Of a stretch of DNA of 64,000 nt, positions 531 through 64,000 are shown piece by piece. The DNA lies in assembly GCA_964247055.1 (NCBI GenBank), contig OZ176052.1, forward strand, positions 3,782,001 through 3,846,000, given 5' to 3'. The translations under genes and the position numbers were made by a program. Source of the stretch: Paragordius varius. Lineage: Eukaryota > Animalia > Nematomorpha. Position 1 is the stretch's first letter. Every line of letters begins with the position of its first letter. The notes under the pieces are model-generated. The model was given only the letters and a program-made list of their open reading frames with translations, was not told the origin of the DNA and made no database searches.

Positions 531-13743
<13,213 letters not shown>

Positions 13744-19735: not shown

Positions 19736-22700
19736 TAAGGTGACCAGATTTTTTGAAGGAAAAAGCGGGACAAATCTGAGAAGGGGGGGGGGGTCATTGG
19801 GGGGTACAACCAAAAATTTTTATACAAAAAAACTATTGTAATATTTATTTATTTTTAACACAAATACATTATAAATATAAAAAAATATGTACTTTACAGG
19901 TTGTTTGTACCTTATTCAATAAATTTAATGCACGAACAAAGGGTGAAGTGATTGTAATATTCTAGAAAAAATAATAAAGACGAAATCATCACAAAGTGCG
20001 CTGGGTGATGCAAGAAGCGGCACAAAAAATATTTTTAACAATTTAGCGAATAATCTTAATCAAAACATTATTGGTAGATACACAACGCTATTCAAACAGC
20101 TACTGATTTGTTACCCCTGGATGTGGAAAATATAGATGCTAAAATGCTTAGATATTGTAGAACTGTTGGTTAGCTCTTTTGCCAGCGATTGAAATATTTA
20201 TAAAAATGTGATCTCCTAGAATCCTATTTTTTATCACAGGAGAAAGGTCAAAATTCCAAGTCAAAAAAGGTTAGAAAATAATTTTATACCATTACTTAAT
20301 CGCAATATTATAAAGCATCTAGAAAAACAAGGCTCAATTAATAGCCAGAATATAAAAATGTTTTATACAGACAGAAACGATTATTTGGAAGACAAGACGG
20401 TGCACAATGACACTTTTTTATGAAGTCTCATTGTTAAATAAATATATTGAATGAAAACTTATATTATGGACAACAGAAAAAAATACGTAGGATAGAAATG
20501 GTTAATAATCATTTTTAAACAAATTATGTTCCATACAATAATATTTTAATTGTAGAATTTGCATTATCTTTAGCTGAACCACTTCTATTAAACGCATTTT
20601 TCCACAGTAAATTAAGTAAGAACAAGGAATCAAATTTAAATGTTGAACAAGTGCCATTTTATGTGTTTAAATATAATTTGACAAATTATGAAGACTTATA
20701 CAATATTTTAAGATTTTTGTTTATTTTTTAACATAAAAACTTTATAAATATAAGAAAATATTTTTTTCTTTGGTATATTTTTTGTTTGAGTGAATGCGTT
20801 TTAGCAGATTGTCATCATTTTTTAAAATATTGTAGAAGTCTTCACAAGAATTTGTCCAATTATATTTGACAGATCAAACTTTAAAGGTTCAACATTTAAA
20901 TTTGATTTTTCCGATGTCCACACCTGATTTACTGTGGAAAAAACGCGCTCAGTAGCAGCGTTGGTTCCAGGTAAAGATAGTGAAAATTCCACAATTTTTT
21001 AAATATTATTGTATGTAATATAGTTGGCTTCAAAATGTGGAATATTTCCAACCATTTCTTTTCTACTGTTTTGTCCATAATTTAAGTTTTTCATTATTAA
21101 TATATCTTTTAACTAAGAATTTTTGGGAACAGATATAATCAAATGATTTTTGAACATCGCACCAATTAAATTCTGGTTTTAATGATATCCAATGAAAATG
21201 ATCAATTTCATTGAATTGCGTCGTCCAGTCTTCCAAATAATCTTTACAGTTTGTATAAAACATTTTTATAAGGTACAGGATATCTTGGAGCGATTTATTA
21301 AGCCTTGTTTTTCTAAATTATTTATATTGCGGATGGTTAATAATATAAAATTATTTTCTAACCTTTCTTGACATTGGAATCAGGTTCTAACTTAATTGAC
21401 TAATTCGATTGCCGAAATTTTGTCACCTCCTACCAATTTAATAACATTTGAAAGAGAGAAGATTAATTATGTAGGGACTCTAACCATATTTTTGAAGAAT
21501 CACTTTCAAAAAACTTTTCCAAAGTTGTAGGACATTTGTTCTGTGATAAAAAATAGGATTTTATAAGATCATACATTTTTAAAATTCTTTCGATAGCTGG
21601 CAGAAGAGCTAACCAACGAGTTTTACAATATCCAAGCATTTTTTGATATTGAACTTCTGCATTTTCACAGAATTCCTTAAGCGTTTCAACGCGTACCCTG
21701 TATATATAAAAAAGATATATATTTTAATAACTAAATTTTCCACATCTAGGGGTAACAAATCAGTAGCTGTTTGAATAGCGTTGTGTAAATGCGCTGCACA
21801 CCCAACGCCAATAATGTTTTGATTAAGATTATCTGTAATTTATGAAAAATATTTTTTGTTCCCCTCCTTGCTTTTCCACCGAAGTTCGTAATGGTATCAG
21901 CGCAATATGCGATGATTTTGTCTTTTAAATTATTATTATCTTAAAATATTCATTATTGAAGTAAAACTTATTTCGGAATTTACACCGGGTAGCGAAATAA
22001 AATCTAAATTAATTACTCCAGTTTCTTTATCAAAATATCTTATTAAAGTGGGAAATAATTATGTTTCCTTATGAGATGCATCAAAGTATAGCGATATGAA
22101 ATTAATTTTCAGCAAATCTTTTTGTACTTCAGAAAATGCATGTGGCGAAAGGACATTGCATATAATGGCTTCAGCCCTTGTACGGGCACATGTAAATTTA
22201 TTGAATAAGGTGCAAATAACCTGTGAGGTACAGTCCATAGATCTGAAGGAATGATTGCGATTAACGGCGTGAAAAGATAACACGCCCTCAGCTAGTGCCA
22301 AATTCTTTTCTTCCTCTCCAAAAGCGGTTTTTCGAAAAAAATTCATTTTGTAAGATGATGCCCCCATATCTAAACATTTTTCATGTTTCTGTGTTTCCAT
22401 ATGCTTTGTAATATCATGCTTGCCGCCATGTGCAAGGGTGAATTCCCCCTCGCATATAAGACATTTAAGATGATTCATTCTTCGTTTTTTTGATAAAAAG
22501 AAAATCTTTCATTAATTCATCGTTGAATTTACAACCTCTTTTTGTGCTCATATTTATAAACTACTATTAGTATAATAAATATTATATTACCTTAATTTTC
22601 TGGAATAGTGTAAGGTACCGATTTGTAGTATCAATTTGTCTTTTAAGCTACCGATTTGTGGTATTAATTTGGCTTTTTAATAATGTTGGCAAGTAAAACA

Positions 22701-41149: not shown

Positions 41150-41212
41150 TTAAAGCACTCTCAGGGCTGCATGCGGCCGGCGGGCCGCGGTTTGAGTGTT
41201 ACTCGATTAGAC
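41150..41212. mobile_element. Isolated hAT-like terminus
   Basis: gggctgcatgcggccggcgggccgcggtttgag resembles Charlie/Buster-type right ends. Confidence 0.45.
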
Positions 41213-41214
41213 TT

Positions 41215-41748
41215 TTGGTAAATATGGTATCCTAAGCGCTTAAAAGGGTTACGTTTTGAACGATCACTAACCGGCATTAGCATAAAACATTGTTTTATTT
41301 TTTCGACATAAAAATGCATACTTGCAAGATAAGGTATTTTGACAATTTAAGACAAGTTGAAAAGAATTAAAGATTGAAATTTTTTTATGGCACAAAATTA
41401 GCTGGAAGTGGAAATGATGATATATTGTTAAACAAACCTAAATTACATAAAGTCCTTATAGAATTAATAATAAAAAGGTGTCAAATTTCGATATACCAGG
41501 AACTCCAGCCCCACCAATGGAACCCATCACGCCTTTAACATTATGTAAATATTTAGTGTAAAAAACAAAATCTTAGTTTCGGATGCAAAAATATAAATAA
41601 TAATTTAAACCTAAATCTATGTTATTCAAATAGAAACGACTAAAAATAGAATTTTTACAGCATTTGGAAAATATGAATTATTTTGACCAAATACTCTATC
41701 TACTGCAATCAAAAAAACGCTAACTAAACTTAAAGGGAAGCGCGGCAT
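41215..41748 (-). pseudogene. Decayed paralog of the Gly/Pro-rich micro-exon gene
   Basis: Exon 1 (41682-41748) reads MPRFPLSLVSVFLIAVDRVFGQ with donor GT changed to AT. Exon 2 (about 41497-41547) reads HNVKGVMGSIGGAGVPG|gt with no AG acceptor. Weak exon-3 trace near 41215-41250. Upstream motif aaattgacaatgacattgat is shared with the intact paralogs. Confidence 0.8.
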
Positions 41749-44700
41749 TTTAAAAGAATCATGTAAAATTTATTTAATAAGTTTGATGACAACAACAACA
41801 AAGTTAGATGTATTTAAAATCAATCAATGTCATTGTCAATTTTGTTTGTTTTCGTTACCTATCAAGCTGTTATTAAATATTTTGCTTTTTGAACACTTGG
41901 CCAAAAATATGAATTTTCATATACAACTAGGCCACATATTAAAATTTGGATAATTCATTCATATCGTTACTTGTTTTGATTTATCGATCTTCAAATTTAA
42001 ATTTGATAATACTTTTCATATCTAATGGTAAACAGTATAATTAATTTAATTATAAACATAAGGAAGATTAAACCTTAAAAATTTTTTATTTTGACATCAT
42101 TATTCAGAAATTATGTGCTATTGAAATTTGTTCAAAGCGTTTTTTTTTCAATGTGCAAAAGAGCTCTAAAAAATGTTTAAAAATAAAAAATGGATATCAA
42201 TCAAAAATTTACTATTATTTAGCAGATATATCATCCAAAATTGGGCTCAAAATAAATAAAAAAACCAAAAATTATCAAAGCAGGGGCGAAGATATATTTG
42301 TTCGAACCCTGGTGTAAAATTCTTGCTTGTCTCTTGATTCTGTATAAGAATTGTTAGCATTTTAATAATTACATTTGGATCCTTATGATTTGTAGTTGTG
42401 CCCAGAGTAGTATAAAACTGCAATTTTTGATAAGAGGGTAAACTTCTAGACCGGAAAAAAATAATAATCCTGAAGGCTTATGACTGCAATCATCGGTTAT
42501 CAGAAAATGCTATAATTGCAAATTTCTGTATTGTTTTCATTATGTCTGTGTTTCAAAATTTATTACATTACTAATCAAAATAGATATACTCCTGCCAAAT
42601 GGTTTAAATTTATATTAAAGGTATAATTATATTTTTATTTGAACCGTACACCTGGAACCAGAATTAGGCTTTTTGGAACCAATCTACTTCTGTTTCTAAT
42701 TTTTTAAAATTTTAAAACCGACATTGGTTTGATATTTATTTTTATACTCTATAATGGGCTTTTACCATATGTTCGACTTAAAAATAAAAAAATCGTTTTT
42801 TAGGATGTTAAAAAAATCGAACAAAAAAATTTCAGAATTACAAAAAATTTACATAGTTTTAAGATTCATAAATTTAATAAGTGCGATTCCGTCTGTCGAC
42901 TAATATTTTTCAGACACGGGGAATTATATGTAAGCCAACTTAGAATTGTTTGATTATAATCAATGCGCCATTGTTTCTAGTTTTATAATTCTGTTAAACG
43001 GAGCTTTGTATTTAAAACTTCTAACTTTATGTATAAGATAATATTTTAATAACTCCATAATATATTTAATAAAAATAACGAGTTCTGAAATCCTTTTTGG
43101 ACGCAACCCGCATAGGTTTTCTTTTTATTATCCAAAATAATTTGACTTCTGTAAAGCCCTGTTTTTAACCAGATAATTGCGCAATCATATGGAATACAAG
43201 CCTATGATTTGCATTAGAAACCAAATTTTATCAATTAACTTGATATGATCTGATGTCCAATACCCATTTATAATTCTATTTCAGATATATTATTGTATAT
43301 AGAGTCAAAATATATAGCTTAACTGTGTACCATAGTCATTTTTCCGGTCATACTTGCGTCAATTGAAAATCTAATTTACTGAACATTTGATTTCATTTGC
43401 TACAATCAATTAATTTTTAATTTATATGTTTGAATTATAGTTTAGTCATAAAATAAATGGTAATAACTTTAAGAATATTCTTCCCGTACCAATCAATAAA
43501 GTTAATTGAATATTTAAAATTCGTGACCGGTCCAAACCGATAAGGCTAAAAATAAATTTTAAAGCAATAAGTTTGTGTAAAATACTTTAATTCAAATGTT
43601 TTTAGGATGTGTATTTGTTCAAAAGTGTGTTATTATTATAATTCAAAAAACGCACGATTCTTAAAATTAAAATCTCTTAATGATACATGAAATAACTGAA
43701 AAAATCATTTTAATTAAAGATGATTAACCCATTCTGCTCCAACATAAATATCAGAGCTAAGGAGCGAGGTTTGCTATCTATTATGCATTTTTTATCAGCA
43801 ATAGAGCTTAGGGCAAAAAGATTAAAAATCGGGTTTAAACCACCAAAAAATGTAATAGTCTCAGGATTGTTGAGGAGAATGGAGCCGGAATAGATTTATT
43901 TTAAAAATTCTAATAGGGTCATTGTCAAAAAATTTAATAAAAACCCAAAGGCATGGGTTACCAAAACCGGTTCTTAACCTTAGGTATAAGGTTAACCAAA
44001 ATCTAAATTTTGCTTGTTATTCTATGTTTATTTGAATATTAAGGCGAAATGATTTTTTATATGGTTAACTTGAGTATTTGAACGATACACAAAATTCCAA
44101 TAACCGTTGATTTCTTGTAACTAATTATATTTAACGCTATGAACAATGCCATGTCTATCTTCAAAAACTAATAATTTTTTTAGCTCTCATTTTGAGGTGA
44201 TTTGTTAATTCATTGATAAAAATCTTCTGTAAATTGTATGTTTCGTATTTTTTAATTATTAACCCTGCGCGTGGCTGCGACACAGACGAAACAATAATCT
44301 ATCAAATAGCCTTCAAAAAGGAAATCCGAGAATATAAATGTTAATAATTAAATTTTAATGAATATACACTATTCGCGAAAGATCACTTCAAAGTCATGTT
44401 TGTGAAGGCGTATTTTATATAAGGTGCGGCTCTACCTAAGACTAATTTAATAAAAGCAACCATAATCTTATCTTGACCTTTATCAGATAAATGCATAGGG
44501 GTAAGGGAGTGTGTATGAACACTGGTTTCATTTAAAAACGTGTATTACCCATGTTAGGCGCTTTAATAAATTAAAAAAAAATATTTTTATGGTAATGTGA
44601 CCAGATAGGCTGTTTTTCGCAGTATAGTACTGGGTTTTTGGAACTGCGCCTGTACTGCGCCCACTTTTGTACTGCTTTTTGAAATTAAAAAAAATTTTTT

Positions 44701-45734: not shown

Positions 45735-48700
45735 TAAGGTGACCAGATTTTTTGAAGGAAAAAGCGGGACAAATCTGAGAAGGTGAAGGGGGGTCGTTGG
45801 GAGGTACAACCAAAAATTTTTATACAAAAAATTTATTGTAATATTTATTTATTTTTAACACAAATACATTATAAATATAAAAAAATTTGTACCTCACAGG
45901 TTGTTTGTACCTTATTCAATAAATTTACATGTGCAGAAACAAAGGGTGAAGATTGTAATATTCTAGAAAAAAATAATAAAGACGAAATCATCACAAAGTT
46001 CGCTGGGTGATGCAAGAAGCGGCACAAAAAATATTTTTAACAATTTAGCTAATCTTAATCAAAACATTATTGGCAGATACACAACGCTATTCAAACAGCT
46101 ACTGATTTGTTACCTGCTTGGATATTGTAAAACTGTTGGTTAGCTCTTTTGCCAGCGATCGAAATATTTATAAAAATGTGATCTCCTAGAATCCTATTTT
46201 TTATCACAGGACAAAGGTCAAAATTCCACAAAAAAGGTTAGAAAATAATTTTATACCATTACCTAATCGCAATATTATAAAGCATCCAGAAAAACAAGGC
46301 TTAATGAATATCCAGAATATAAAAATGTTTTATACAAACAGAAACGATTATTTGGAACACAAGACGGTGCACAATGAACTTTTTTATGAAGTCTCATTAT
46401 ATTAAATAAATATATTGAATGAAAACTTATATTATGGACAACAGAAAGAAATACGTAGGATAGAAATGGTTAAAATAATCATTTTTAAACAAATTATGTT
46501 CCATACAATAATATTTTAATTCTGGAATTTGCATTATCTTTACCTGAACAACTGCTAATGAAGGCGTTCCACAGAAAATTAAGAAAGGACACGGAATCAA
46601 ATTTAAATGTTAAATAAAAGCCATTTTATGTGTTCAAATATAATTTGACAAATTATGAAGACTTATACAATATTTTAAGCAATTTTGTTACTTTTTTAAC
46701 ACAAAAACTTTAAATAAAATATTTTAGTCTTTGGTATATTTTTTGTTTGAGTGAATGCTTTTTAGCAGATTGTCATCATTTTTTAAAATATTGTAAAACT
46801 TCACAAGAATTTGTCAAATTATATTTGACAGATAAAACGGCCTTTAAAGTTTCAACATTTAAATTTGATTTTTCCGATGTCCACACCTGATTTACTGTGC
46901 AAAAAACGAGCTCAGTAGCAGCGTTGGTTCCAGGTAAAGATAGTGTCAATTCCACAATTTTCAAAATATTATTGTATGTAATATAGTTGGCTTCAAAATG
47001 ATGAAATATTTCCAACCATTTTTTTTCTACTGTATATTTTTCTTTTGTCCATAATTTATGTTTTTCAATATTAATATATCTTTTAACTAATGATACTTCA
47101 GAAAAAGATCATTTTCTGAAAGATTACTTTTTGAGAATTTTTGGGAGCAGATATAATTAAATGATTTTTGAACATCGCACTAATCATCTGATTTTAATGT
47201 TATCCAATGAAAATGAATTGCGTCGTTCAGTCTTCCAAATAATCTTTACATTTTGTATAAAACATTTTTATATGGTGCATGATATCTTGGCGATTTATTA
47301 AACCTTGTTTTTCTAAATTATTTATTATATTGCGGATGGTTAATGGTATAAAATTATTTTCTAACCGTTCTTGACATTGGAATTTTAGGTTACTAACTTC
47401 ATTGGCTACTTCGATTGCCGAAATTTTGTCATCTTCTAAATTTAGTGACATTTTGAAAAAGAGAAGCTTGATTATGTAAGAATTTTAACCATATTTTTTA
47501 AAAATCACTTTCAAAAAACTTTAAGTGGTAGCACATTTGTCCTGAGGTAAAAAAAGATTTTAAAGGATCATACATTTTTAAAATTCTTTTAATAGCTAGC
47601 ATAAAAGCTAACAAACGAGTTTTACAATATCCAAGCATTTTTTGATATTGAACTTCTGCATTTTCACATAATTCTTTAAGCGTTTCAACATGTACCGTGT
47701 ATATATAAAAATAGGAATATATTTTAACAACTACATTTTCCACATCTAGGGGTAACAAATCAGCAGCTGTTTGAATAGCGTTGTGTATTATATGCGCTGC
47801 ACACCCAACGCTAATAATGGTTTGATTAAGATTATCTGCTAATTTATGAAAAATATTTTTTGTCCCTCCTTGCTTTTCCACCAAAGTTCGTATTGGTGTT
47901 GTCAGCGCAATATGCGATAATTTTGTCTTTTAAATTATTTTTTTCTAGAATATGCATTATTGAAGTAAATATTATTTCGTAATTTTCACCGGGTAGGGAA
48001 ATTAAATTTAAATTTTAATTTTTACTCCGGTTTCTGAATCAAAAAAATATCTTATCAAAGTGGGAAATAATTTTGTTTCATGGTGATTTGAAGCATCAGA
48101 GTATAGGGATAAGAAATTAATTTTTAGCAAATCTTTTTGTATTTCAGAAAATGCATGTGGCGAAAGGACATTGCACACAATGGCTTCAGCCTTTGTACGG
48201 GCACATGTAAATTTTTATGGAATAACGTGCGAATAACCTGTGAGGTACAGTCCATAGATCTAAAGGAATGATTGTGATTAACGGCGTGAAAAGATAACAC
48301 GCCCTCAGCTAGTGCCAAATTCTTTTCTTCCACTCCAAAAGCGGTTTTTCGAAAAAATCGCTCATTTTGTAAGATGATGCCGTCATATCTAAACATTTTT
48401 TATGTTTCTGTGTTTCCATATGCTTTGTAATATCATGCTTGCCGCCATGTGCTAGGGTGAATTCCCCCTCGCATATAAGACATTTAACAGATGATTCATT
48501 CTTCGTTTTTTTAATAAAAGGAAAATCTTTCATTAATTCATCGTTGAATTTACAACCTCTTTTTGTGCTCATATTTATAAACTACTATTAGTATAATAAA
48601 TATTATATTACCTTAATTTTCTGAAATAAACGTGTAAGGTACCGATTTGTGGTATCAATTTGTCTTTTAAGCTACCGATTTGTGGTATTAATTTGGCTTT

Positions 48701-49139: not shown

Positions 49140-50489
49140 TATATGTAGTGTATGTTATATTTTAGTGATATTGTTTAAAATTAAGCATTTAGCTTTCACC
49201 AAAAAATATATTTGAAAAAATTGCGCACCTTTCGCAATTTATACGGAGCACCTACCACAAAAGTGTAAATATCTTTAATAATTCGTAAAGGTTAAAACCA
49301 AAAGCACCACTATAATCCTGATATTTTCCTATCAGAATATATACATATCATCAGGATATTTTTTGTGGAAATGTAATATATCCCACCGATGGTGTAAAAA
49401 CAGGGAAAATATGTTTTAATTTTGTACTGCGTCCAAGTTCAAAATATCTGGTCACATTATTTTATGGTAAATGAAGGCGATCCCCTTTTACCCAAAATTT
49501 CTTCAAAGAAATGGTTTCTCAGAATTTCTTAATACAAAAAAGTATAATTAACCATACTCACTGCATTTCAATACGGATATAAAAATTTGTTGTACCTTAA
49601 TGGATTTACATGATTTTTGAAAAATTACTGCAAAGTTAATATTCTACATTTTTAAAAAATTGATTTGCCGGTAATCATTTTTAAAGTATTGGAAAATTAT
49701 TTAAGTGATTAATTTGGATATTAAACACGACGATCCCCATGTTGCTTTAACACACTCATAGAAGGGTTCAAGGCAACTCTGTTTCAAATTACAAAAGCAT
49801 ATTATAGGTTAAATAAACAATATTAATATATATTTATTTATTTTAATAGTAACAACACCATCAATTCCTGGTACTGCTTCATGACCTTCTACCTTTTTAT
49901 ACTCGTTGACATGTTGGGGTAGTTTTATATCCCAGAGCTCATTTCGTAAATAAACCACTGCTTCAAACGTTATTTTAGCTAGAATATAATTGTGAATTTT
50001 TGTTCTCATGTATTAGATAAATATATGTTTACATTATGTGTAAGACTCTAAGGTTGAGACAGCGCCAAAACATTTTTGAAACGAACAGCTGATATTAAAA
50101 TCAAAATAAATCAAGTTTTTGCTGGTAAAATGCAGCAAAGCTTTTTACAATGGATTATTTATATTTACTGACCATAATATACATTTATTTGGCTATTAAC
50201 GATTTAAAATTTAAAAATTGCAGCGAAAAGGTTTTTTTATTTTACATTTTTAAAAAAATTTGTTTTATGGGCCTAAAAGGCCTTTATATCTTACTTTTTA
50301 ATTTATATTCCGATCGCTCTAGAACAGGGCTTCTTAGACTTTTGTAATTCCCGACCCCATTAATAATAGCGAGTTTCTTAACGACCCCAACAATTCGAAA
50401 AACGCTTAGAATTGTTGATAATATTTATCAGGATTATTTCGGTTTTAAGAGATTGACAAAAATAAATCTGCATTTTTTATAAATTTCTA

Positions 50490-51851
50490 TACCATTTTTC
50501 ATGCAAAAACATCATTTTTTCAACCAAATGCAACATTTTTTCAACCAAACGCAACATTTTTTCAAGCAAACGCAACATTTTTTCAAGCAAAGACATCATT
50601 TTTTCAAGCAAACGCAACATTTTTTCAAGCAAACGCAACATTTTTTCAAGCAAACGCAACATTTTTTCATCCAAACGCAACATTTTTTCAACCAAAGACA
50701 ACATTTTTTCAAGCAAAAACAACAATTTTTTAAAAATTAAAAACCATTTTTTTTATTTTAAGACATATTAAATTTAAAGTTAATGGAAATTAATTTTAGC
50801 GTAGAATTATGATTTTTATTATTTTATAATAAATATGTGATGGTATGATTGATTTTCAAACAAAATTTTGCCCATAATTGCATTATTTATATTATATTTT
50901 TTCTTTTACAACAGTTTCACTAAATCAATAAATACAACTTGCGCTTTAAGAGTGTCTTGTTTAAAGTTTCTTTCATTTTTTTGCAAACAACCGTTATTTT
51001 CGTATGTAATTATCTATTTTTTTTAATTTAAACTAATATCTTTATTTATTAGTAATTGAATCAAAAATAATATTTTTATAGTAAAAACATCTTTATTTGT
51101 TTCGAACTAATTTTCTTTAAATCAATATTATTGACTTATTGTTGTTTTAAACTAAATATTACGATTAATAACCCACAAATCCTTGATGTTTAATAATGTT
51201 AAATTTTTTATAAAAAATAATATTGATATATATACGGTTCTTATGAAAGAAATGGTATTCCCTTAAAAGTTTAGGAAATAAAGAAAATAGGTTAATGATA
51301 GGATAGATGAATATAATATTGCTTGATTAATAAAAGTTAGAATCAAAATTAAAATATTGAAGGACCAAATTGAAGTGTTCTAGGACCAACTTTAAATTTT
51401 CAAGGACAATTTTGAAGCGCAAAATGTATGGACTGATAAGGTTAAACTAAAGTTGTAAAAGAATAAAATAATATAAATAATGCAATTATGGGCAAAATTT
51501 TGTTTGAAAATCAATCATACCATCACATATTTATGATAAAATAATAAAAATCATAATTCTACGCTTAAATTAATTTCCATTACTTTAAATTTAATATGTC
51601 TTAAAATAAAAAAAATGGTTTTTAATTTTTAAAAAATTGTTGTTTTTGCTTGAAAAAATGTTGTCTTTGGTTGAAAAAATGTTGCGTTTGCTTGAAAAAA
51701 TGTTGCGTTTGCTTGAAAAAATGTTGCGTTTGCTTGAAAAAATGATGTCTTTGCTTGAAAAAATGTTGCGTTTGCTTGAAAAAATGTTGCGTTTGGTTGA
51801 AAAAATGTTGCATTTGGTTGAAAAAATGATGTTTTTGCATGAAAAATGGTA
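50490..51851. mobile_element. Foldback-type element, about 400-bp TIRs built on a 21-bp tandem repeat
   Basis: ta|TACCATTTTTCATG...CATGAAAAATGGTA|ta; arms contain ttttttcaagcaaacgcaaca repeats; the site is empty in the sister hAT near 15945-15955. Confidence 0.88.
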
Positions 51852-51904
51852 TATAATATCTTCTGATTGATAGTAAATTTATACAAGATATTATAATGAT
51901 CGGC

Positions 51905-53978
51905 GGTCCCTTTTTAAAGGAAAGAATGATATTATACAAATTCCCCAGAAATGTGTTTAAGTGAACTCATATGGCTTCTTAATTTTTTAAAAATTAGATC
52001 CAAAACCACGCCATTTTTGTATGGTGTCTCAGTTACCGTTAGACCTCTACCCATAGACCTATATGGAAAAAGCGCTGACTTAAATTATTAGCCTTTATAG
52101 GGCAAATATTTGAATCATCTTTGATACCATCGTCTCATGGATTTTCGAAAAAATACCTTAACACTAAATTATCGTTATATGATGGCGTATTTTTAGGGCA
52201 TAAAGGCCCCAAATTAACGGCTAATAAAAAAACGCCTGATTTTTTTACCTTGTTACGGATATCAAGCTTTTAATGAGCTCATATGGCTTCATGATTTTCT
52301 GTAAATTACCTCCAAAACAAAGTGAATAGTGGCGCAGTTTTTGCCGGGTAGCTCCTAATCCAGGGCAGGTATAAAAAAGCGCTGGTTAAAATTGCCCTCA
52401 TATGGGGATTATCTGGAATTATCATGGAATCCATTCCTATTAGAATCATAGGTTTTCTGAAATTTGGCTCCAAAGGTATGCTATATCGATATGGTGACGC
52501 AGTTTTACGCGGGTAGCCTCTAACCAGGGACGAAACGAAAAACGCACGATTAGATTTGCCTTATTCGGGTAATACCTGGAATCATGATTGATTCCATATG
52601 CTCTCGTGGTGCCCCAAAACCAAAAAGTCACTCTATGGTGGCGCATTTTTCAGAGCAAGGGCCTAACTGGGTAATTTAATAAAACCGCTTTACTCAAATT
52701 TTTGCCTTTTTAGGGTAATATTTCGAGCCCTTATTGAACTCATATGGCCTGATAAGCTTTCTAAAATTTGCCTCCAAAGTCACGCTGTATCGATATGGAT
52801 GCGCAGTTGTTGGCGGGTAGCCCCCTACCCAGAGGCCAATATAAAAACGACGTTCGTAAAAAATTTTGTCTTTATAGGTTAATAGCTGGAATCATCATTC
52901 ATTCCTTATGTTACTAATAGTTTTTGGAATGGCTTCACTATCAATCATAGCGCATTTTTTAGGGCGTAAAGGGCCTAATTAACGGCTAATCTAAAAAAAC
53001 CGCTGGACTTTTATAAGTTAAAATAAAAACCCGGAAATTTTTATATAAATATAAAAAATCAATAATTAAGAAATTACCAAATCGTAATATTTCAGGCCTA
53101 TATTAAATTTATGTGGCCTGATAAGTTTTTTGAAAACTAACTCCTAAACAACGCAATTTCGATATGGTGGCGCAGTTTTAGGCGGGTAGCTCCTTACCCA
53201 AACGCTGATACAAAAAAGCGCATGATTAAAATTTTTGCGTTTTTACGGATAGGAATCATTATTGATTCCTTGTGCTCTCATTAGTTGTTGGAAAAATTGC
53301 CTTAAAACTAAAAAATCATTCTATAGTGGCGTATTTTCAGGGCGTGAATAAAAAATCATACGACCTAAATTTTTGCCTTGTTATGGGCAATATTTTAAGC
53401 ACCTATTGAACTCATATGGCATGATAGGTTTTTTGAAATTTAGCCCCAAAGGCACGCCCATATGACAGAGCAGTTTTTAGCGGATATCTCCTTACCCAGC
53501 TGCCAATATAAAAAAACGCTCGACTAAAATATTTGCCTTTTAACAAGGAATACCTGGAATCCTTATTGAATTTTTAGGGTATCATACCTTATGCGAAAAA
53601 TAGATTCAAAAAATTATATTTGTGGACATTTTTTTTTGGAAAAAAATGCATTTTACGGGGGGGGGGGGGCGGGTAAAAAGAGGGTTGAAATTAAAAAAGC
53701 GAGCCGACTATGTTCGAAATGAAAATAAGTAAAAAAAAATATATGAAATCAACTGGTCCAACAAGGTTTCAGGAAAATTGTCTTAAAGACATGATTTTTC
53801 AAAATAACCTGTTTTTTACACGGGGTGGGCCCGAACTGGGGGCCTAATTCAAAAAAAGCGATGTGTCGGGGCATTCATTTTAATGAATATATTTTTCGAC
53901 ATTTGGATTTGAATGGGTATACCGGTTTTCCAGAAACAGATTACAAAGCCGCATTTTCCATTTTTATAAATATATAGA
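51905..53978 (-). mobile_element. Helitron, 3'-truncated, with expanded internal tandem repeats
   Basis: Same 5' end (plus-strand ttttataaatatataga|t) and internal sequence as 15986-17215 and 61519-62524; CTAG end missing. Confidence 0.75.
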
Positions 53979-54590
53979 TTTTACAAGTTAAAAAACATTT
54001 TTTGTTAAATTTAATTTCTTGCGACCCCATAATTTTTCTAAGCGACCCCAAACGGGGTCGCGACCCACAGTTTAAGAAGCCCTGCTCTAGAATATAAAAC
54101 TATCCCATAATGGAGTGTTACCGTATTATTTTTATAGATAGTGTCATGTTTTTTCAAACTTTTGTTTATTCAAAATAGATCATAAATCTCTTTAAAAATA
54201 TGTAATCAATTGCGCTATGGTTGTTATCTTGTCAAAATTGCTAACGTTTTACCAAAAATATAAAAAATTGATAACTCAATACATTTTGTATTTTTAAAGT
54301 TGGACGCAATAACACAAAGTGTGTTTTATTGTATCAATAGGTAAAAGTTAAAAATCACCTTTTTGAGGTCTTAAACCAAACACAACTTATTTATGACACT
54401 TTGACAGGTAAAAAATACAAATAAAATTGACATTGATCGATTTTCCAAAACAATTCATTTAGTTGATGTTATTATGATGTCTAAAAAACATATAAAAGGG
54501 CAAATTTTTTAAGAGTTTTCACTTTTCATAATTATAACTTTAAACTTTTAATTACTTAATCTCTTACCTCATCATCCTATCAATTATAAA

Positions 54591-54905
54591 ATGGTCCGTT
54601 TTCTTCTTTGTTTAATAAGTGTTTTCTTGCTCGCAGTTGTTGGAGTATTCGGACAAAGTAACCTGCATATATTTCAAAATTCTTTAATTAAAAACTTTAA
54701 AAAAATGTGTGAATTTAAAAGGATCGTATGCAACCCTTGAAATTAGATCAATTTAATTTATTAATCCATTCAAATTTTAATAGTTTTCCCTTAAAAAGTG
54801 TAATATTTATATTATGTATATTTATTAGTACCCAATATTGGAGGCGTAGTGGGGTCCATTGGTGGAGGAATTCCAGGTAAATCATAAAATTTTATTTTTT
54901 TTCAA

Positions 54906-54948
<43 letters not shown>

Positions 54949-55612
54949 TTTTTAGTCAAAAGCAACACTTTATCAACCAAACGCAACATTTTTTAGTTAT
55001 CTTTGCTTGAAAAATGATGCGTTTGCTTGAAAAAATGCTGCACTTGCTTGAAAAAATATATGTGATAAATTAATTGGATTTAGGTGTGCCAGGCGTACCT
55101 AAGATACCATCTCTTCCAATCCCAAGTATATATATATATATATATAATAAAATATATTTTTTATTTTATTTTACATTTAATTAATATTATCTTTTAGGTG
55201 TACCTAAAGTACCGGCAAGTATGCTTTTTTATCGCTAAGATATTTTTGTATTGACTTTTAATTTATACAATATTTGACCATAAAATATACTTAAAAATCT
55301 CTTAAAAATATCATTTTGCCAATTTTTAATCTAAAACATATTTGTTTTCTAGTTCCATCCGTACCAAAAGTTCCAAGTATTCCAGGTATTTATTTTAATC
55401 TTCATACATCTTCTAATGTCAAATATTTTTTTAATACTATAAATTAATTTGCCACAAATATTTAAAGTATAATAATAATTATACTTGCTAGCCGCTCCGA
55501 AATTGCCCGCTGTCCCAAAACCTTCACGTAAAATATCTGCTAATTATAATTTTTAAATTTTATTTGGCCTGATTATAAATCCTTATTTTCATATTCTATT
55601 ATAGTTGGCTAA
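54591..55612 (+). CDS. Micro-exon gene A: secreted Gly/Pro-rich peptide precursor, 84 aa
   Basis: Exons 54591-54657, 54829-54876, 55084-55125, 55198-55218, 55353-55385, 55492-55527, 55605-55612, all GT-AG and phase 1. Product MVRFLLCLISVFLLAVVGVFGQIPNIGGVVGSIGGGIPGVPGVPKIPSLPIPSVPKVPAIPSVPKVPSIPAAPKLPAVPKPSLG*. Exons and splice sites are conserved in paralog B while introns diverge. Confidence 0.88.
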
Positions 55613-56503
55613 ATGAATGGAGATTCAATGATAGCTTACGATTCCTAAATTATTAATATTTATAGTTTTTTTCATAAAATTTTTTTTGCACCTTATTAGT
55701 TATTTTTATTTTACATCAATTATTGTAACTCTCAAAATTTAATAAATAGAATCATAACGCATCTTATATATTGTATCTCATATGCATTATTTTAAGTGTC
55801 GACCGTTCAAGGAGTAATAACGTTGACTATAAGCAGTTTACGGTCATATACAAACAGCATAAATTGGAATTTCTGCGTGCAACTCCTGTATGACTATATT
55901 ATTACCATTATGTTTTTTCAAAATTACTGCTTCCTATTTCTCAAGAGCCACTCTAGTCCCAGTACCAAATTTTTAAAACCTACGCTGGTTTGTTTTTGAA
56001 TTTTGATAAACATATTTGATTCTGGTTCTATACTATCTTAAATGTCCTTTCTTCAAATAAGAAAAAATCTCTCTGTATTTAATAATTGCATACGGATTAA
56101 AAATTTATAGAACGTTTTAAAAATCATCTATATTATCAGCTTTGGGAAGTTATTAACCATGGACATGGTGAGATCATATTCTAACAACTCAATGATATAG
56201 GAAAAAACATTAACAAAAGATGTTCGTGGTAATGTCAAAAACAAAATATTATTAAAAAATTTATAAAGAAAAAATGCATATTACCGGTTCTAAAAAACTA
56301 GTTTAGAAAACTTTTTTTGGAATCCCGCTTTTGCTCGAATTTTTCGATATCCACCTGTGGAAATTTTATTTGTATTGTCTGATTTTGAGCTTTGTATTTC
56401 ACGAGATAACTACGCAATCATGTGCAAATTGAGTCAAAGATTTACCATTTATATGGTTTCCAATAACCTATTTTTGCAATAGTTGTATTAATGTAAAATT
56501 AAA

Positions 56504-57046
56504 CACTTGGATACAACACATCCATTTCAGTCCTCCGATTCAAATTGGGTCTTTGGAGACACCATGCGTGTTTAAAATCAAATATTTTTAAAAATATGGA
56601 ACATATAAAATCATTGCAAAAGATTGCACTGATATAACATTAATGCACCGAAATATAAATAAGATTTATCTAAAAATACTTGATATTACTTATCTTATGG
56701 ATAAGCCTCTAAAGTAATAATTTAGTCATAATAACATGTGTGCATTAGCTAAATAAAAAAATAATGCAAATTAAACCACGTTTGTTTATATCAATGTTAG
56801 ATATTAACAAATATCTATCATTTTAGCGTAAGATTCAATTAAACACGATATTTTTATAAAATGGCGTAGAAGTAGTTTGATATGGAACTTTTCAAAACTA
56901 AATTTTATTTAGTATTTTGACTTATTCATATAATTTTTATTGGGATGAAGCATAAGTTTGAATTGAAACCATTTCTGTTAGGTTTTTTAAAATATAAACT
57001 TAAATAAAGCTCGGGATCCCTAGATAACCCAATTTGAAACGAAGTG
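56504..57046 (+). mobile_element. Diverged piggyBac-like MITE (duplicate at 58708-59250)
   Basis: Starts cacttggatacaac, ends cgaagtg; colinear with 40343-40908. Confidence 0.75.
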
Positions 57047-57287
57047 TTTGAAAAACCTATATAAATTGTATAGTAGTCAATATTTTTCTGCCTTAACCAT
57101 GTATTATAGTTTTTTTCCAGATACACTTTAGATGTTTTTATATATATACAATTTTTTAGTCAAAAGCAACACTTTATCAACCAAACGCAACATTTTTTAG
57201 TTATCTTTGCTTGAAAAATGATGCGTTTGCTTGAAAAAATGCTGCACTTGCTTGAAAAAATATATGTGATAAATTAATTGGATTTAG

Positions 57288-57816
57288 GTGTGCCAGGCGT
57301 ACCTAAGATACCATCTCTTCCAATCCCAAGTATATATATATATATATATAATAAAATATATTTTTTATTTTATTTTACATTTAATTAATATTATCTTTTA
57401 GGTGTACCTAAAGTACCGGCAAGTATGCTTTTTTATCGCTAAGATATTTTTGTATTGACTTTTAATTTATACAATATTTGACCATAAAATATACTTAAAA
57501 ATCTCTTAAAAATATCATTTTGCCAATTTTTAATCTAAAACATATTTGTTTTCTAGTTCCATCCGTACCAAAAGTTCCAAGTATTCCAGGTATTTATTTT
57601 AATCTTCATACATCTTCTAATGTCAAATATTTTTTTAATACTATAAATTAATTTGCCACAAATATTTAAAGTATAATAATAATTATACTTGCTAGCCGCT
57701 CCGAAATTGCCCGCTGTCCCAAAACCTTCACGTAAAATATCTGCTAATTATAATTTTTAAATTTTATTTGGCCTGATTATAAATCCTTATTTTCATATTC
57801 TATTATAGTTGGCTAA
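57288..57816 (+). other. Duplicated exons 3-7 of micro-exon gene A, without promoter or exons 1-2
   Basis: Exons 57288-57329, 57402-57422, 57557-57589, 57696-57731, 57809-57816 match gene A with intact splice sites. Confidence 0.85.
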
Positions 57817-60455
57817 ATGAATGGAGATTCAATGATAGCTTACGATTCCTAAATTATTAATATTTATAGTTTTTTTCATAAAATTTTTTTTGCACCTTAT
57901 TAGTTATTTTTATTTTACATCAATTATTGTAACTCTCAAAATTTAATAAATAGAATCATAACGCATCTTATATATTGTATCTCATATGCATTATTTTAAG
58001 TGTCGACCGTTCAAGGAGTAATAACGTTGACTATAAGCAGTTTACGGTCATATACAAACAGCATAAATTGGAATTTCTGCGTGCAACTCCTGTATGACTA
58101 TATTATTACCATTATGTTTTTTCAAAATTACTGCTTCCTATTTCTCAAGAGCCACTCTAGTCCCAGTACCAAATTTTTAAAACCTACGCTGGTTTGTTTT
58201 TGAATTTTGATAAACATATTTGATTCTGGTTCTATACTATCTTAAATGTCCTTTCTTCAAATAAGAAAAAATCTCTCTGTATTTAATAATTGCATACGGA
58301 TTAAAAATTTATAGAACGTTTTAAAAATCATCTATATTATCAGCTTTGGGAAGTTATTAACCATGGACATGGTGAGATCATATTCTAACAACTCAATGAT
58401 ATAGGAAAAAACATTAACAAAAGATGTTCGTGGTAATGTCAAAAACAAAATATTATTAAAAAATTTATAAAGAAAAAATGCATATTACCGGTTCTAAAAA
58501 ACTAGTTTAGAAAACTTTTTTTGGAATCCCGCTTTTGCTCGAATTTTTCGATATCCACCTGTGGAAATTTTATTTGTATTGTCTGATTTTGAGCTTTGTA
58601 TTTCACGAGATAACTACGCAATCATGTGCAAATTGAGTCAAAGATTTACCATTTATATGGTTTCCAATAACCTATTTTTGCAATAGTTGTATTAATGTAA
58701 AATTAAACACTTGGATACAACACATCCATTTCAGTCCTCCGATTCAAATTGGGTCTTTGGAGACACCATGCGTGTTTAAAATCAAATATTTTTAAAAATA
58801 TGGAACATATAAAATCATTGCAAAAGATTGCACTGATATAACATTAATGCACCGAAATATAAATAAGATTTATCTAAAAATACTTGATATTACTTATCTT
58901 ATGGATAAGCCTCTAAAGTAATAATTTAGTCATAATAACATGTGTGCATTAGCTAAATAAAAAAATAATGCAAATTAAACCACGTTTGTTTATATCAATG
59001 TTAGATATTAACAAATATCTATCATTTTAGCGTAAGATTCAATTAAACACGATATTTTTATAAAATGGCGTAGAAGTAGTTTGATATGGAACTTTTCAAA
59101 ACTAAATTTTATTTAGTATTTTGACTTATTCATATAATTTTTATTGGGATGAAGCATAAGTTTGAATTGAAACCATTTCTGTTAGGTTTTTTAAAATATA
59201 AACTTAAATAAAGCTCGGGATCCCTAGATAACCCAATTTGAAACGAAGTGTTTGAAAAACCTATATAAATTGTATAGTAGTCAATATTTTTCTGCCTTAA
59301 CCATGTATTATAGTTTTTTTCCAGATACACTTTAGATGTTTTTCTAAAAAAAATTGTTTCATTAATATACAATTTAGAGGGTCTCTTTTTTGTTTTGTAA
59401 TCAAAGAGGACTTGTGTCAAGACAAAAAATTTAATTTCTATCCTTGATAACGGTTGAGAGTGTCTTAAGTAGATAATCACATCGTTCTAGAATATTCGTT
59501 GTTGTCTCTGCTCTCTTTTTTCTGATTCGGAATAGACAACAAAAATCCTAAAACGGTGGGAAGTGTCAGCAGATATACTTCCCAGTAATTAGGGAGTCTA
59601 AGAATCATTAAAGAAAGGAAAGAGGAAGATGATGGTAGAGAACGACTTATAAGGATAAAGACAAAGTTTGCTTCTGAAAGAATGAAAATCTCTTTTGAGA
59701 CTGCCGTGATCAATAGGTTTTTATTCAAAGGAGTAAACTTTGTCTACATCCTTGTGAAAGAATACTCCTTTCATCTTGTTGATGTTATATTTATTCATTA
59801 TCTACTTCGCCTGCACAGGGCTGACAATGAGGATAATTGGTCAATTTCGTAGTTCGAACTCCGCACTCACATACAATGTAAAATTCTTTACCTATACCAT
59901 CATGGAAATAATTGGTATATTTAAGAATATTCGCATGTATAAATCAATTCGATCAAATTCGTTTACGAATTCAACCACCAAGCCAAAGATTAAATGTAAA
60001 AGATGTGCATATGCAAGGTATTACAATATATAAAATATATTATGATTTATATCACATGAAATAACATCATTAAAAACCATTAGATAAATTAAAATTTTTG
60101 CTCATATCTGCTCACAAACATATAGGATGGCAAAAAATTTTCTGAACTGCTTGATGCCTACTCCCTTTGCGTTTAATAGAAGCAATGATGCTCAGCGCAA
60201 AAAAATTATAAATAATGTTTAAAACCATCAAAAAATGTAAATGGCTCAGGATGAGTAGAATGGAACGGAATAAATTTTCGTAATTATAATAAAAAATACA
60301 AAAGTATTTGGTATAAAACCGCTTTTAGACGTTCGGAAGTATCACCAAAAAAACTGTATTTAATGTCTTTAAATAAAAGACAAACTGATCAAACTTTAAT
60401 GGTTAATGAATTTGAAAAATATGCAAAATCCAAAAACTGTAAAGATTGTCCAAAC

Positions 60456-60642
60456 AAGGGATGTCCAACACGCTTTGTGGTGAGGAAAAGTGCTTAAAAA
60501 AATGTTAAAAAAATAAAAAATTGGATTTTAATCCAAGTTTAACGATTAGTTAGTAATACATCATCCAAAATGCTTCTAATAAATTAAAAAAACCAAAAAT
60601 AAACATATCAGTCCGAGAAGACATTTGTTATAGACAACCCTA
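60456..60642. mobile_element. Short AGGGATGTC...GACAACCCTA MITE (probably hAT)
   Basis: Imperfect terminal inverted repeats; relatives at 4863-5045 and about 42150-42310. Confidence 0.55.
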
Positions 60643-61518
60643 GTCTGAAATATAACATATCCATTCTGTGTAAAACTATAAGCAATGCCTAACTAATCTG
60701 TTAAAGTTTAAATTATTATGAATTTTTTCAGCTCTCAGAATCATTTAAAATGCCTTTTGTGATAATAATTTAATAATATTATCTCTGACGCGTTATTTTA
60801 TGATTTTCATATGAAAACTGTGCCCAACGCGTCGCCGATAGACAAAACAAAGATTTGTGAACAGTCTTTAAAAAGGAGGCCAGACTATGATCAGGCTTTC
60901 AAAAGAAATGGTGAATGACTAAAATTGAAATCTAAATGAACTACCCTACACTCAAAAAATCACTAAAAGGTTACGCCAGTGAAAGCATAATTAGGGTGGA
61001 ACTCCACCTAAAGATCAATTTATAAAAGAGCAGCCATAATCTCTACCTTAATGAAATACATAGGAGTGGATATGAATACCGGAGCTTATCTAAAAACGTG
61101 GCTTTACTATATTCGGCGCTCTCATAAAGGAAAAAAAATATTTTTTATTGAAATCGAATGGGCATCCCTGTATGCCGGAAAATTGCTCAAATATAAGATT
61201 TTGGGCACTTGTGTTTTTTCAGCCTTTATTTTGCAGGGGGTGGGGGATAAGGAGCTATTTAAGAAAAATTAGTTCGACTATATATTATAAATTGTATTTT
61301 AGTGCATTAACTTTACGCGTTTATCGAGAAATCGTTTTGAAAGCCAACCTTTTATTTGTTGGTCCCATTTAATGTATTTTTCAATTAAGTTAAATGGTGA
61401 AGGAATCGACCCCAATACTGCTTCAACACACTTATAGAAGGGTCGGAGGCAATTCTGTACCAAATTACAATAGCAATTTATAGAAATAGCACAACATATA
61501 AATATATATATATATATA

Positions 61519-62524
61519 CTAGCGTAAATCTCGTGCTGCTACGCAGCCCGAGGAAGTCCTTCGGACTTCTGGGAGGAGGGAGACATTTTTGATTTTATAA
61601 GGAATTTTGGTATGCGGCACGAAGTTTTAAAATGATTCACATTGTCTCATATTCTGAAATTTGGCTCCAAAGGCATGCTGTATCGATATGATGGCGCAGT
61701 TGTAGCCGGGTAGCCCCCTACCCAGAGGCCAATATAAAAATGGAGTTTAATACAAAAATTTTGCCTTTATACCTGGAATCAACGTTTATTTCTATGGAAG
61801 AATGGCTTCAAAACTAAATAATAGTTTAATGATAGCGCATTTTTTGAGGGAGTAAAGGGCCTATTTATCGGCTAATTCAAAAAATCCGCTCGACTTTTGA
61901 CTTTTTACGGGTAATACTTTAAGCAGCTATAGAACTTATATGGCCTGATAGGTTTTCTGAAAATTAGCCTTAAAAGCACGCTATTTGGATATGATGAATC
62001 AGTTTTTAGCGGGTAGCTCCTTACCCGCAGCTATCATGAAAGAAACGCTTGACTAAAATTTTTGACTTTTATCAGGGAATACGTGGAATCCATATTGAAT
62101 TATTACGGTCTCATACCTAGGGCGAAAAATAGATTTAAAAAATTATTTTTGTGGACTTTGTTTTTTGAAAAAATGGCATTTTACGGGGGGAGCGGGTAAA
62201 AAGAGGGCCTAAATCAAAAAAGCGAGACGACTATGTTCGGCGCAATCGAAAATAAATTAACAAAAATTATATTGGAAATTTAATGGTCCAACACGTTCTC
62301 CAGAAAATTGAAGACACGATTTTTGTGGACTTCTGTTTTCAAAAAAAACCCGTTTTTCACACGGGGTGGGCCGAACTGGGGGCCTATTTCAAAAAAAGGG
62401 CGAAGCTATTGTCGGGGCATTCATTAATGATTATATTTTTTCGATGTTTGGATTTGAATGGGTCTACCGGTTTTCCGGTACCAGATCACAAAGCCAGCAT
62501 TTTCCATTTTTATAAATATATAGA
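61519..62524 (-). mobile_element. Non-autonomous Helitron
   Basis: Minus strand A|TC 5' end; 3' hairpin (plus ctcgtgctgctacgcagcccgag) followed by CTAG|T; no TSD. Confidence 0.85.
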
Positions 62525-63049
62525 TATTTGTTGGCCACTTCAAGTCTCGTATAAGGTGCTCTTTATGTCGTGTTTTTGCACACTTTTGTTTAATTATAAA
62601 ACATCATAAATCTTGGTCTAAATTTTAAAATAATGCTGTTTTATAATACTTGTTATGTTGTCAAAATCGCTAACATCTTGTCAAATGTATTGGAATCAAT
62701 ACAATTTCTATTTTTACAGTTAGATGAGTTTGAGTTTCAAATAAACATTTGATAAATACCATATTTAAATGTATTAATTTAAATAAATATTTAAAAGTTT
62801 AAAACTGAAGATTTACCTTTTTTCACAGGTCTTACAAACAAAACTTATTTATGACAGTTTGACAGGTAAAAAAATACAAATAAAATTGACATGACATTGA
62901 TCGATTTTCCAAAACAAATCATTTTGTGGATGTTGTTATCATGTCTAAAAAATCTATATAAAGGCAAATTTTTTTATAGTTTTCACTTTTTAAAATTATT
63001 AAACCCTTAAACTTTTAAATCTCTTATCTCGTTTCTTATCAACTATAAA

Positions 63050-63917
63050 ATGGCCCGTTTTCTTCTTTGCTTAGTAAGTGGTTTCTTGCTCGCAGTTGCC
63101 GGAGTTTTCGGACAAAGTAAACCCCCATTTTTAAATAACATTTTAATTTAAAATTATAAAAAAATTGTGATTTAATTACTCTTAAACTTCCATTCATCGA
63201 TATAAATATTATCCAATTTTCTATATTTATTAGTACCGAATATCGGAGGCATAGTGGGGTCTATTGGTGGTGGAATTCCAGGTATATCATTTTTTTTATA
63301 TTTTACACAATACTATATATATATATATATGATTTCTATATTGGATATTATCGCTTTAGGCGTACCTGGTGTACCTAGCCTTCCTAAATTACCATCCCTT
63401 CCAATTCCAAGTATATATACAATAATCATATAATAAATATATTTTCTAGTTCTCCTTTTTTAACATTTGAATATTATTATTTTTATTTTTAAGGTGTACC
63501 TAAAGTCCCGTCTCTTGCAGGTATGCGTTTATATCGTTAAAATATTTTTGAATTGACTTTTCATTTAAATTTTCATTTGAAATAATTTATCAAACATTTA
63601 AACAAAATGCAAATATATTTGAGCACATCTATATACTCGAAAAATATCATTTGCCAATATTTTTTCCCAAAACATATTTGCCTTTTAGTTCCATCCGTGC
63701 CAAAAGTTCCAAGTATTCCAGGTACTTAATTTTATAATTTTTCACTTATTATTTTTATTCTTAATTATTAAATTACCAATCATTAAATAATTATCTTTTT
63801 TAGCCGCTCCTAAATTGCCCGCTGCCCCAAAACCTTCACGTAAAATATCAGCTAATTCTAATTTTTATTTTATGTTTTTGATTATAAATCATTTTACATA
63901 TTTTTATAGTTGGCTAA
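63050..63917 (+). CDS. Micro-exon gene B: secreted Gly/Pro-rich peptide precursor, 89 aa
   Basis: Exons 63050-63116, 63234-63281, 63360-63410, 63494-63520, 63689-63721, 63804-63839, 63910-63917, all GT-AG and phase 1. Product MARFLLCLVSGFLLAVAGVFGQIPNIGGIVGSIGGGIPGVPGVPSLPKLPSLPIPSVPKVPSLAVPSVPKVPSIPAAPKLPAAPKPSLG*. Confidence 0.9.
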
Positions 63918-64000
63918 ATTGATGGAGATTCAACGATGCTACACAATTCCTAAATTCCTGATTTTTATTGTCTCATTTTATAAAAGAATTTTTCCAAAAA

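Follow-up and report, generated by a model that had tools for sequence, protein, structure and literature searches.

Two apparently constrained seven-exon genes for small proteins with a signal-peptide-like N-terminus in the horsehair worm Paragordius varius

Introduction

The micro-exon genes (MEGs) of schistosomes are built of 10-20 exons, most of them about 15 nucleotides (nt) long (range 3-81 nt), separated by introns of 0.1-5 kb. Their alternative splicing is documented, with 35 genes giving rise to at least 87 proteins; they are restricted to the Schistosomatidae, and studies of the ratio of nonsynonymous to synonymous substitution rates (dN/dS) have been used to argue for their diversification. 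A micro-exon gene of the myxozoan Tetracapsuloides bryosalmonae, cited in a first-pass annotation of the DNA considered here, is confirmed in a review. The present analysis concerns two genes, A and B, that were recognized within 64,000 nt of the genome of Paragordius varius (Nematomorpha; contig OZ176052.1, positions 3,782,001 to 3,846,000 of the forward strand; hereafter, the window), each of which distributes the code for a small protein with a signal-peptide-like N-terminus over seven short exons.

Related designs are known from other animals. The bicycle genes of aphids are rich in small internal exons, nearly all of which begin at codon position 2, with a minimum of five exons and an average of about 17; they encode rapidly evolving salivary effectors with CYC (Cys-Tyr-Cys) motifs, and their gene structure is more telling than their sequence. 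With tropoelastin, all exon borders are of phase 1:1, and exons may be removed in cassette-like fashion without a change of frame. A literature search found no relevant work joining micro-exon genes with the Nematomorpha. As argued below, A and B are orphan genes of an already known design, very probably for secreted Pro-rich peptides preserved by selection, solid as genes and unproven as a system for generating variation.

Structure of genes A and B

Gene A occupies positions 54591-55612 and gene B positions 63050-63917 of the window, and each consists of seven coding exons that together give a spliced open frame closed by TAA (84 codons in A and 89 in B). The listing of open reading frames (ORFs) at the two loci holds only fragments of 50 amino acids or fewer, and therefore neither gene is visible in it. 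The first-pass annotation had proposed exactly such a hidden pair, and all of its coordinates and exon lengths were located in the sequence, as follows for gene A:

54591-54657, plus strand, 67 nt: coding part of exon 1; 21 signal-peptide-like residues and Gln22, ending in phase 1
54829-54876, plus strand, 48 nt: exon 2; Gly-rich segment, 90% identity to exon 2 of B
55084-55125, plus strand, 42 nt: exon 3; triplets of the form aliphatic-Pro-x, with B longer by 9 nt in frame
55198-55218, plus strand, 21 nt: exon 4; B longer by 6 nt in frame
55353-55385, plus strand, 33 nt: exon 5; 97% identity to exon 5 of B
55492-55527, plus strand, 36 nt: exon 6; 94% identity to exon 6 of B
55605-55746, plus strand: terminal exon; 8 coding nt (55605-55612), 3' untranslated region (UTR) and AATAAA (55741-55746)

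For gene B, with exons 2 to 6 assigned from the sequence:

63050-63116, plus strand, 67 nt: exon 1; signal-peptide-like
63234-63281, plus strand, 48 nt: exon 2
63360-63410, plus strand, 51 nt: exon 3
63494-63520, plus strand, 27 nt: exon 4
63689-63721, plus strand, 33 nt: exon 5
63804-63839, plus strand, 36 nt: exon 6
63910-64000, plus strand: terminal exon; 8 coding nt (63910-63917), with the 3' UTR continuing beyond the end of the window

The last 8 coding nt of gene A complete a Leu codon and add Gly and the TAA stop (55610-55612). These 8 nt had been presented as a terminal coding exon in their own right; they are indeed there, but they open a longer terminal exon, which extends to the AATAAA at 55741, 130 nt past the stop codon. 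The 83 nt that follow the stop codon of gene B are 81% identical to their counterpart in gene A.

The 12 introns of the two genes, 70-207 nt in length, all start with GTA and end with an AG preceded by a T-rich tract, such that 24 of 24 splice dinucleotides are intact. All five internal exons of each gene (21-51 nt) are multiples of three and start at codon position 2. Every intron lies in phase 1 because exon 1 has 67 nt and each internal exon a length divisible by three; this uniformity, also claimed at first pass, holds for 12 of 12 introns and every internal exon. The content of guanine plus cytosine (GC) is 0.47-0.49 in the exons vs 0.17-0.18 in the introns, and over codon positions 1, 2 and 3 of the exons it takes the values 0.64, 0.5 and 0.27. 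The window itself is AT-rich (GC 0.22-0.36 per 2 kb) and holds many transposon remains, a composition that fits the published Gordionus genome (GC 26.93%; 63.8% repeats, chiefly DNA transposons).

Selective constraint between the paralogs

The gene models at this locus are backed by selection between paralogs rather than by RNA. Comparison of the spliced frames of A and B identified 17 synonymous and eight replacement differences, giving a Nei-Gojobori dN/dS of 0.15 (binomial p=3.2e-5 against neutrality); within the mature part alone, the counts were 14 and four, and the ratio 0.11. A ratio near 1 had been named beforehand as evidence against the genes. With the five other reading frames, the corresponding ratio of proportions (pN/pS) ranged from 0.33 to 2.3, and therefore the constraint acts on the predicted frame. 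All eight replacements are exchanges among Val, Ile, Leu, Ala and Gly, which bears out the earlier description of the exon differences as largely synonymous or conservative.

Only two indels separate the exons of A and B, one of 9 nt in exon 3 and one of 6 nt in exon 4, and both preserve the frame, as had been noted from the first. The two genes share the same set of exons and differ by gain or loss of repeat units within them. The accompanying claim that the introns have diverged requires qualification: it is true of indels, with gap columns making up 35% of the intron alignment vs 5.6% of the exon alignment, but substitution identity in the alignable intron parts (87.5%) is barely below that of the exons (90.6%). 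Judged from these features of the sequence, A and B look like real genes under selective constraint, each encoding a small protein whose N-terminus resembles a signal peptide.

Conserved promoter region

Conservation extends to the 5' flanks, where the 200 nt upstream of A and B are 90% identical over aligned positions. The following elements were recognized:

54429-54444, plus strand, 16 nt: upstream element of gene A (GACATTGATCGATTTT), by motif matches; kept in the alignment of A, B and a decayed third copy, C (described below)
62893-62908, plus strand: upstream element of gene B, by motif matches
54491-54497, plus strand: TATA box of gene A, conserved in B
62955-62961, plus strand: TATA box of gene B, conserved with A

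In both genes, the TATA box precedes the ATG by about 95-100 nt. A scan of the window for the upstream element, allowing up to two mismatches, returned four matches where 0.15 would be expected by chance; three of the four lie 5' of A, B and decayed copy C, and the fourth is a weaker match elsewhere in the window.

Predicted products

The predicted products, of 84 and 89 amino acids, begin with a signal-peptide-like stretch, continue with a Gly-rich one and end in about 15 triplets of the form aliphatic-Pro-small/Lys. Residues 1-21 have the n-, h- and c-region (n/h/c) layout of a signal peptide in both A and B, with Arg3, a hydrophobic core of 17 residues (mean Kyte-Doolittle value 3.05 for A, 2.62 for B), and Val and Gly at positions -3 and -1, in keeping with the secreted type of product proposed at first pass. 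Cleavage would probably take place between Gly21 and Gln22, a site judged by eye. A mature peptide cut after Gly21 would start with Gln and comprise 62 (A) or 67 (B) residues plus the final Gly. The Gln after the predicted site is identical in A and B, as is the C-terminal Ser-Leu-Gly-stop.

The mature peptides are composed of 26-27% Pro, with five Lys and no Asp, Glu, Arg, Cys, Tyr, Phe or Trp, for a net charge of +5. The residue before Pro is Val, Ile, Leu or Ala in 15 of 16 cases, and the residue after it is Gly, Lys, Ser or Ala, again in 15 of 16; Ser next to Pro would suit O-glycosylation. The end of each internal exon falls within the third residue of a triplet, and therefore the exons represent whole repeat units. 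The indels that distinguish the two products, of three and two residues, likewise amount to changes in repeat units.

Further copies of the family

The A and B paralogs are part of a segmental duplication, about 8.46 kb in size, which also takes in a repeat array upstream of the genes. Downstream of the promoter and first two exons of gene A, a second duplication was found:

54936-57139, plus strand: copy 1 of a tandem duplication; starts in the TA microsatellite of gene A intron 2 and carries exons 3-7
57140-59343, plus strand: copy 2; a second set of A exons 3-7, with neither promoter nor exons 1-2
57288-57329, 57402-57422, 57557-57589, 57696-57731 and 57809-57816, plus strand: exons 3-7 in copy 2, identical to those of A

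The duplicated unit of 2204 bp is 100% identical between its copies, with zero mismatches over 54946-57130 at an offset of 2204. Word depth in sequencing run X1, the one closest to the assembly, was 529-998 in the duplicated part vs 249-615 in the flank, which is suggestive, though not proof, of two real copies in that individual.

A search of the window with the product (tblastn) revealed a third family member, copy C, at about 41174-41860 on the minus strand:

41174-41860, minus strand: decayed copy C, delimited by tblastn and three-way alignment; relics of exons 3-5 retained
41816-41831, minus strand: upstream element of copy C, by motif matches
41683-41748, minus strand: exon-1-like stretch, 68% identity at the protein level
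41492-41542, minus strand: exon-2-like stretch, in frame

Copy C has lost the stretch with the TATA box and 5' UTR, the donor of intron 1 (AT for GT) together with its acceptor, and the donor of intron 3; beyond the relic of exon 5 lies a transposon-like insert. The possibility that it works with other splice sites was considered and rejected; no usable acceptor precedes the exon-2-like stretch, and a deletion has removed the promoter region. Between exon 1 of C and its counterparts in A and B there are 11-14 synonymous and eight to nine replacement changes (pN/pS 0.18-0.25), and therefore C would have split off early, been constrained for long and died late, making the family an old one. As read from its sequence, copy C serves as an internal control: decay at this locus breaks splice sites, a form of damage absent from A and B. 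In the window, the family thus appears to comprise the intact A and B, the partial duplicate and the decayed copy C, of which the first-pass proposal for this pair named only the first two.

Comparison with known gene designs

As with A and B, schistosome MEGs combine a signal-peptide exon with short symmetric exons, any internal one of which could be dropped in frame; both encode small orphan products that are hard for annotation pipelines, secreted in the MEGs and probably so in A and B, and both occur as tandem copies with transposon-rich flanks. Unlike the MEGs, A and B have only seven exons (internal ones of 21-51 nt), introns of 70-207 nt and a dN/dS of 0.15. In exon number and intron length they are at the mild end of the MEG description, and no sequence relation to any MEG family was found by a search among proteins of 46-147 amino acids or with Pfam at E-values up to 10. 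With the bicycle genes, A and B share a product of (predicted) secreted type and phase-1 introns, and their seven exons exceed the minimum of five; unlike bicycle proteins, the mature peptides have neither Cys nor Tyr and hence no CYC motif.

The product of A and B resembles tropoelastin in being repetitive and rich in Gly, Val, Pro and Lys-Pro stretches, and in having exons that match repeat modules. We take its Ile/Val-Pro-Gly and Ala-Pro-Lys-Leu-Pro sequences to be similar to the hydrophobic and KP-type cross-linking motifs of elastin, and presumably its Lys-Pro stretches more generally recall the cross-linking motifs. Unlike these peptides of about 65 residues, however, the vertebrate protein tropoelastin has a mass of about 60-70 kDa and some 34-36 exons, its hydrophobic domains alternate with cross-linking ones, and its C-terminus contains Cys; the resemblance appears to be one of composition only, with no homology. 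The phase-1 architecture had been said at first pass to define MEGs. It does match the described MEG design, but the aphid bicycle genes and tropoelastin have it too. On this comparison, an all-phase-1 structure is best regarded as a general 1:1 design of repetitive secreted proteins, and not as the mark of one family.

Secreted, cationic, Pro-rich peptides of the amphipathic polyproline-II type form a further point of reference. These include the (VHLPPP)8 domain of gamma-zein, apidaecin, drosocin and Bac7, in which a period of three residues separates the hydrophobic from the polar face of an extended helix. They differ from the A and B products in their use of Arg or His, in their PRP or PPP motifs and in their length, mostly 18-45 residues; the A and B products have one Pro per triplet, Lys as the sole charged residue and an extra Gly-rich head. 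Proline-rich antimicrobial peptides are cationic and antimicrobially active, with at least 25% Pro and with Arg-Pro motifs; the mature A and B peptides have a charge of +5, 26-27% Pro, no Arg and no PRP motif.

Sequence runs covering the locus

Five sequencing runs contain the locus, introns included, and behave as DNA. In these DNA runs, the word depth of the exons is not that of a repeat family. The exons were also considered as part of a transposon, and this was rejected: their word depth is ordinary, vs about 94,000 for a miniature inverted-repeat transposable element (MITE) in intron 2 of gene A, which by this depth, taken from run X1, belongs to a very abundant repeat family. Run X3, labelled 'organism B', matches gene A over 54431-55643 without any difference and at low depth. 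A second 'organism A' sample, seen in the comparison of X3 with X4/X5, has seven differences in intron 1 and one at exon site 54595 (T>C, converting Val2 to Ala, as in B). The labels 'organism A' and 'organism B' may not mark two species.

Repeats and neighbouring features of the window

The remaining features of the window, several of them repeats close to the genes, were as follows:

54946-55060 (intron 2 of gene A) and 57150-57264: miniature inverted pair of a 21-nt unit, the same unit as in the arrays at 50453-51880; it lies exactly at the left edge of the 2204-bp duplication, beside the TA microsatellite
50453-51880: foldback-type element with inverted arrays of the 21-nt unit at both ends, about 10-11 copies each, and a palindromic interior
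52411-53500 and 61652-62050: array with a period of about 300 bp upstream of both genes, copies 60-88% alike, within the duplication of about 8.46 kb
1463-4791, minus strand: P-type Ca2+-ATPase of SERCA type, its exons judged by motifs in ORF translations; introns of several hundred bases
36612-38677, minus strand: fragments of retroelement ORFs, reverse-transcriptase-like
22059-22478 and 47498-48572, minus strand: related sets of transposase-like ORFs with a common zinc-finger-like N-terminal stretch

The abundant repeat with the 21-nt unit may have seeded the 2204-bp tandem duplication. The 21-nt tandem arrays at 50.4-51.9 kb were considered as a related coding repeat and rejected as such, being the inverted ends of the foldback-type element. 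No tRNA-like gene was found in the array of about 300-bp period, and scanning the window against Rfam and for tRNA genes gave no hits.

Discussion

It is moderately probable, in our assessment, that A and B are intact paralogs in a small birth-and-death family which, by ordinary splicing, encode a secreted peptide of polyproline-II type that binds a surface. Each gene would be transcribed from its own TATA promoter, and the removal of six ordinary GT-AG introns would leave a single predominant mRNA, about 0.45 kb long. The product would enter the secretory pathway by means of its 21-residue signal peptide, to be cut between Gly21 and Gln22, and the mature peptide is predicted to have a hydrophobic head rich in Gly, followed by a tail of some 15 triplets (Val/Ile/Leu/Ala, then Pro, then Lys/Ser/Ala/Gly). 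This tail is expected to extend as a polyproline-II rod, whose turn of three residues would give it an aliphatic, a Pro and a small/cationic face. The rod would act extracellularly by sticking to a surface, be it cuticle or matrix, a membrane, or the surface of a host or microbe. The uniform phase 1 and the exon lengths divisible by three would represent the footprint of gene growth by repeat units, because the exons hold whole numbers of such units, and not a working device for exon shuffling.

Several observations weigh against this proposal. A three-residue periodicity of Pro reaches significance for A (p=0.02) but falls short of it for B (p=0.19), owing to one or two two-residue 'hiccups' that shift the register. 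The function is read from composition, and the signal peptide from its n/h/c layout. Four DNA-like runs, examined over 54400-57100, contained no splice joints at the predicted junctions; their reads cover the introns like the exons, and contigs cross them. The five RNA-labelled runs of the species yielded 0.00 of the sampled words of A or B; these runs are few, small and of unstated stage, such that they provide a weak negative on expression in the sampled material and are silent on isoforms. Finally, the 84-residue product found no match, not even itself, in a search of 5.8 billion proteins (46-147 amino acids, including ORFs from run assemblies). Together with the lack of any Pfam match at E-values up to 10, this upholds the first-pass statement that no homolog is recognizable.

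The alternative that fares best would have A and B encode an end-capped bioactive peptide, hormone-like or a Pro-rich antimicrobial, in which Gln22 is converted to pyroglutamate and the terminal Gly is spent in amidating Leu, for action on a receptor or on microbes. The placement of Gln directly after the predicted cleavage site, the Ser-Leu-Gly-stop end and the 8 terminal coding nt, all shared without change by A and B, would be accounted for in this way, as would the net charge of +5, the high Pro content (26-27%) and the absence of acidic residues. We nevertheless think it unlikely, given that the cleavage site is a guess and could also fall between Gly18 and Val19, that 62-67 residues is long for an amidated messenger, and that the product has no dibasic processing sites and none of the Arg-Pro motifs of known Pro-rich antimicrobial peptides.

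Variation of the MEG kind has also to be weighed, whereby the phase-1 cassettes would be skipped in many combinations to produce peptide variants at the host interface, and the duplicate of exons 3-7 would be a fresh cassette expansion. The source is a parasitoid worm, any internal exon could be omitted in frame, and the design matches that of schistosome MEGs and aphid bicycle genes. Moreover, exon 6 of A could join the second exon 3 at 57288 in frame, and the lack of signal in RNA-labelled runs would fit stage-specific expression. Against these points stand dN/dS values of 0.11-0.15, in sharp contrast to the rapidly evolving MEG and bicycle families, and introns that are short (70-207 nt), with uniformly good sites, unlike the long introns of MEGs. 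A and B share their exon set and differ by within-exon repeat-unit indels only, and tropoelastin provides an example of the 1:1 design in a repetitive secreted protein that has no antigenic role. We consider this reading quite improbable. The more specific notion is that these are lineage-specific host-interface peptides of the parasitic stage only, with cassettes combined in many ways, such that the MEG/bicycle strategy would have arisen independently for a third time, here on an amphipathic polyproline-II repeat. It appears slightly more doubtful still; if true, the identical duplicate of exons 3-7 would be a snapshot of cassette expansion. The first-pass proposal of a splice-diversified host-interface family finds no support here. 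Purifying selection as strong as that between A and B speaks against MEG-like diversification in an arms race, and the ratio for the mature part (0.11) is the reverse of the rapid change usual among host-interface effector families.

That A and B no longer work, as recently silenced duplicates or chance ORF fragments, is very improbable; it would accommodate the absence of an RNA signal in the runs examined and of any homolog, and the clear death of one family member (copy C), but it conflicts with the frame-specific synonymous excess (p=3e-5), with the intact state of all 24 splice dinucleotides and of both start and stop codons, with exon indels that keep the frame, with the conservation of promoter, TATA and poly(A) signals, and with the absence from A and B of any of the decay seen in copy C.

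Returning to the preferred reading, of A and B as working paralogs for a secreted, surface-binding peptide, the locus makes family turnover visible in a single window, in which two intact genes stand beside a recent partial duplicate and a dead member. Genes for secreted peptides with such tiny exons are missed systematically by ORF-based annotation, and often by annotation poor in RNA, and the A/B locus offers a compact example. It also bears on the question of whether the phase-1 micro-exon design is a machinery of variation or the mode of growth of repetitive secreted proteins. The secretions of horsehair worms are almost unstudied, and a conserved, cationic, Pro-rich peptide would be a cheap candidate for tests of surface binding and antimicrobial activity.

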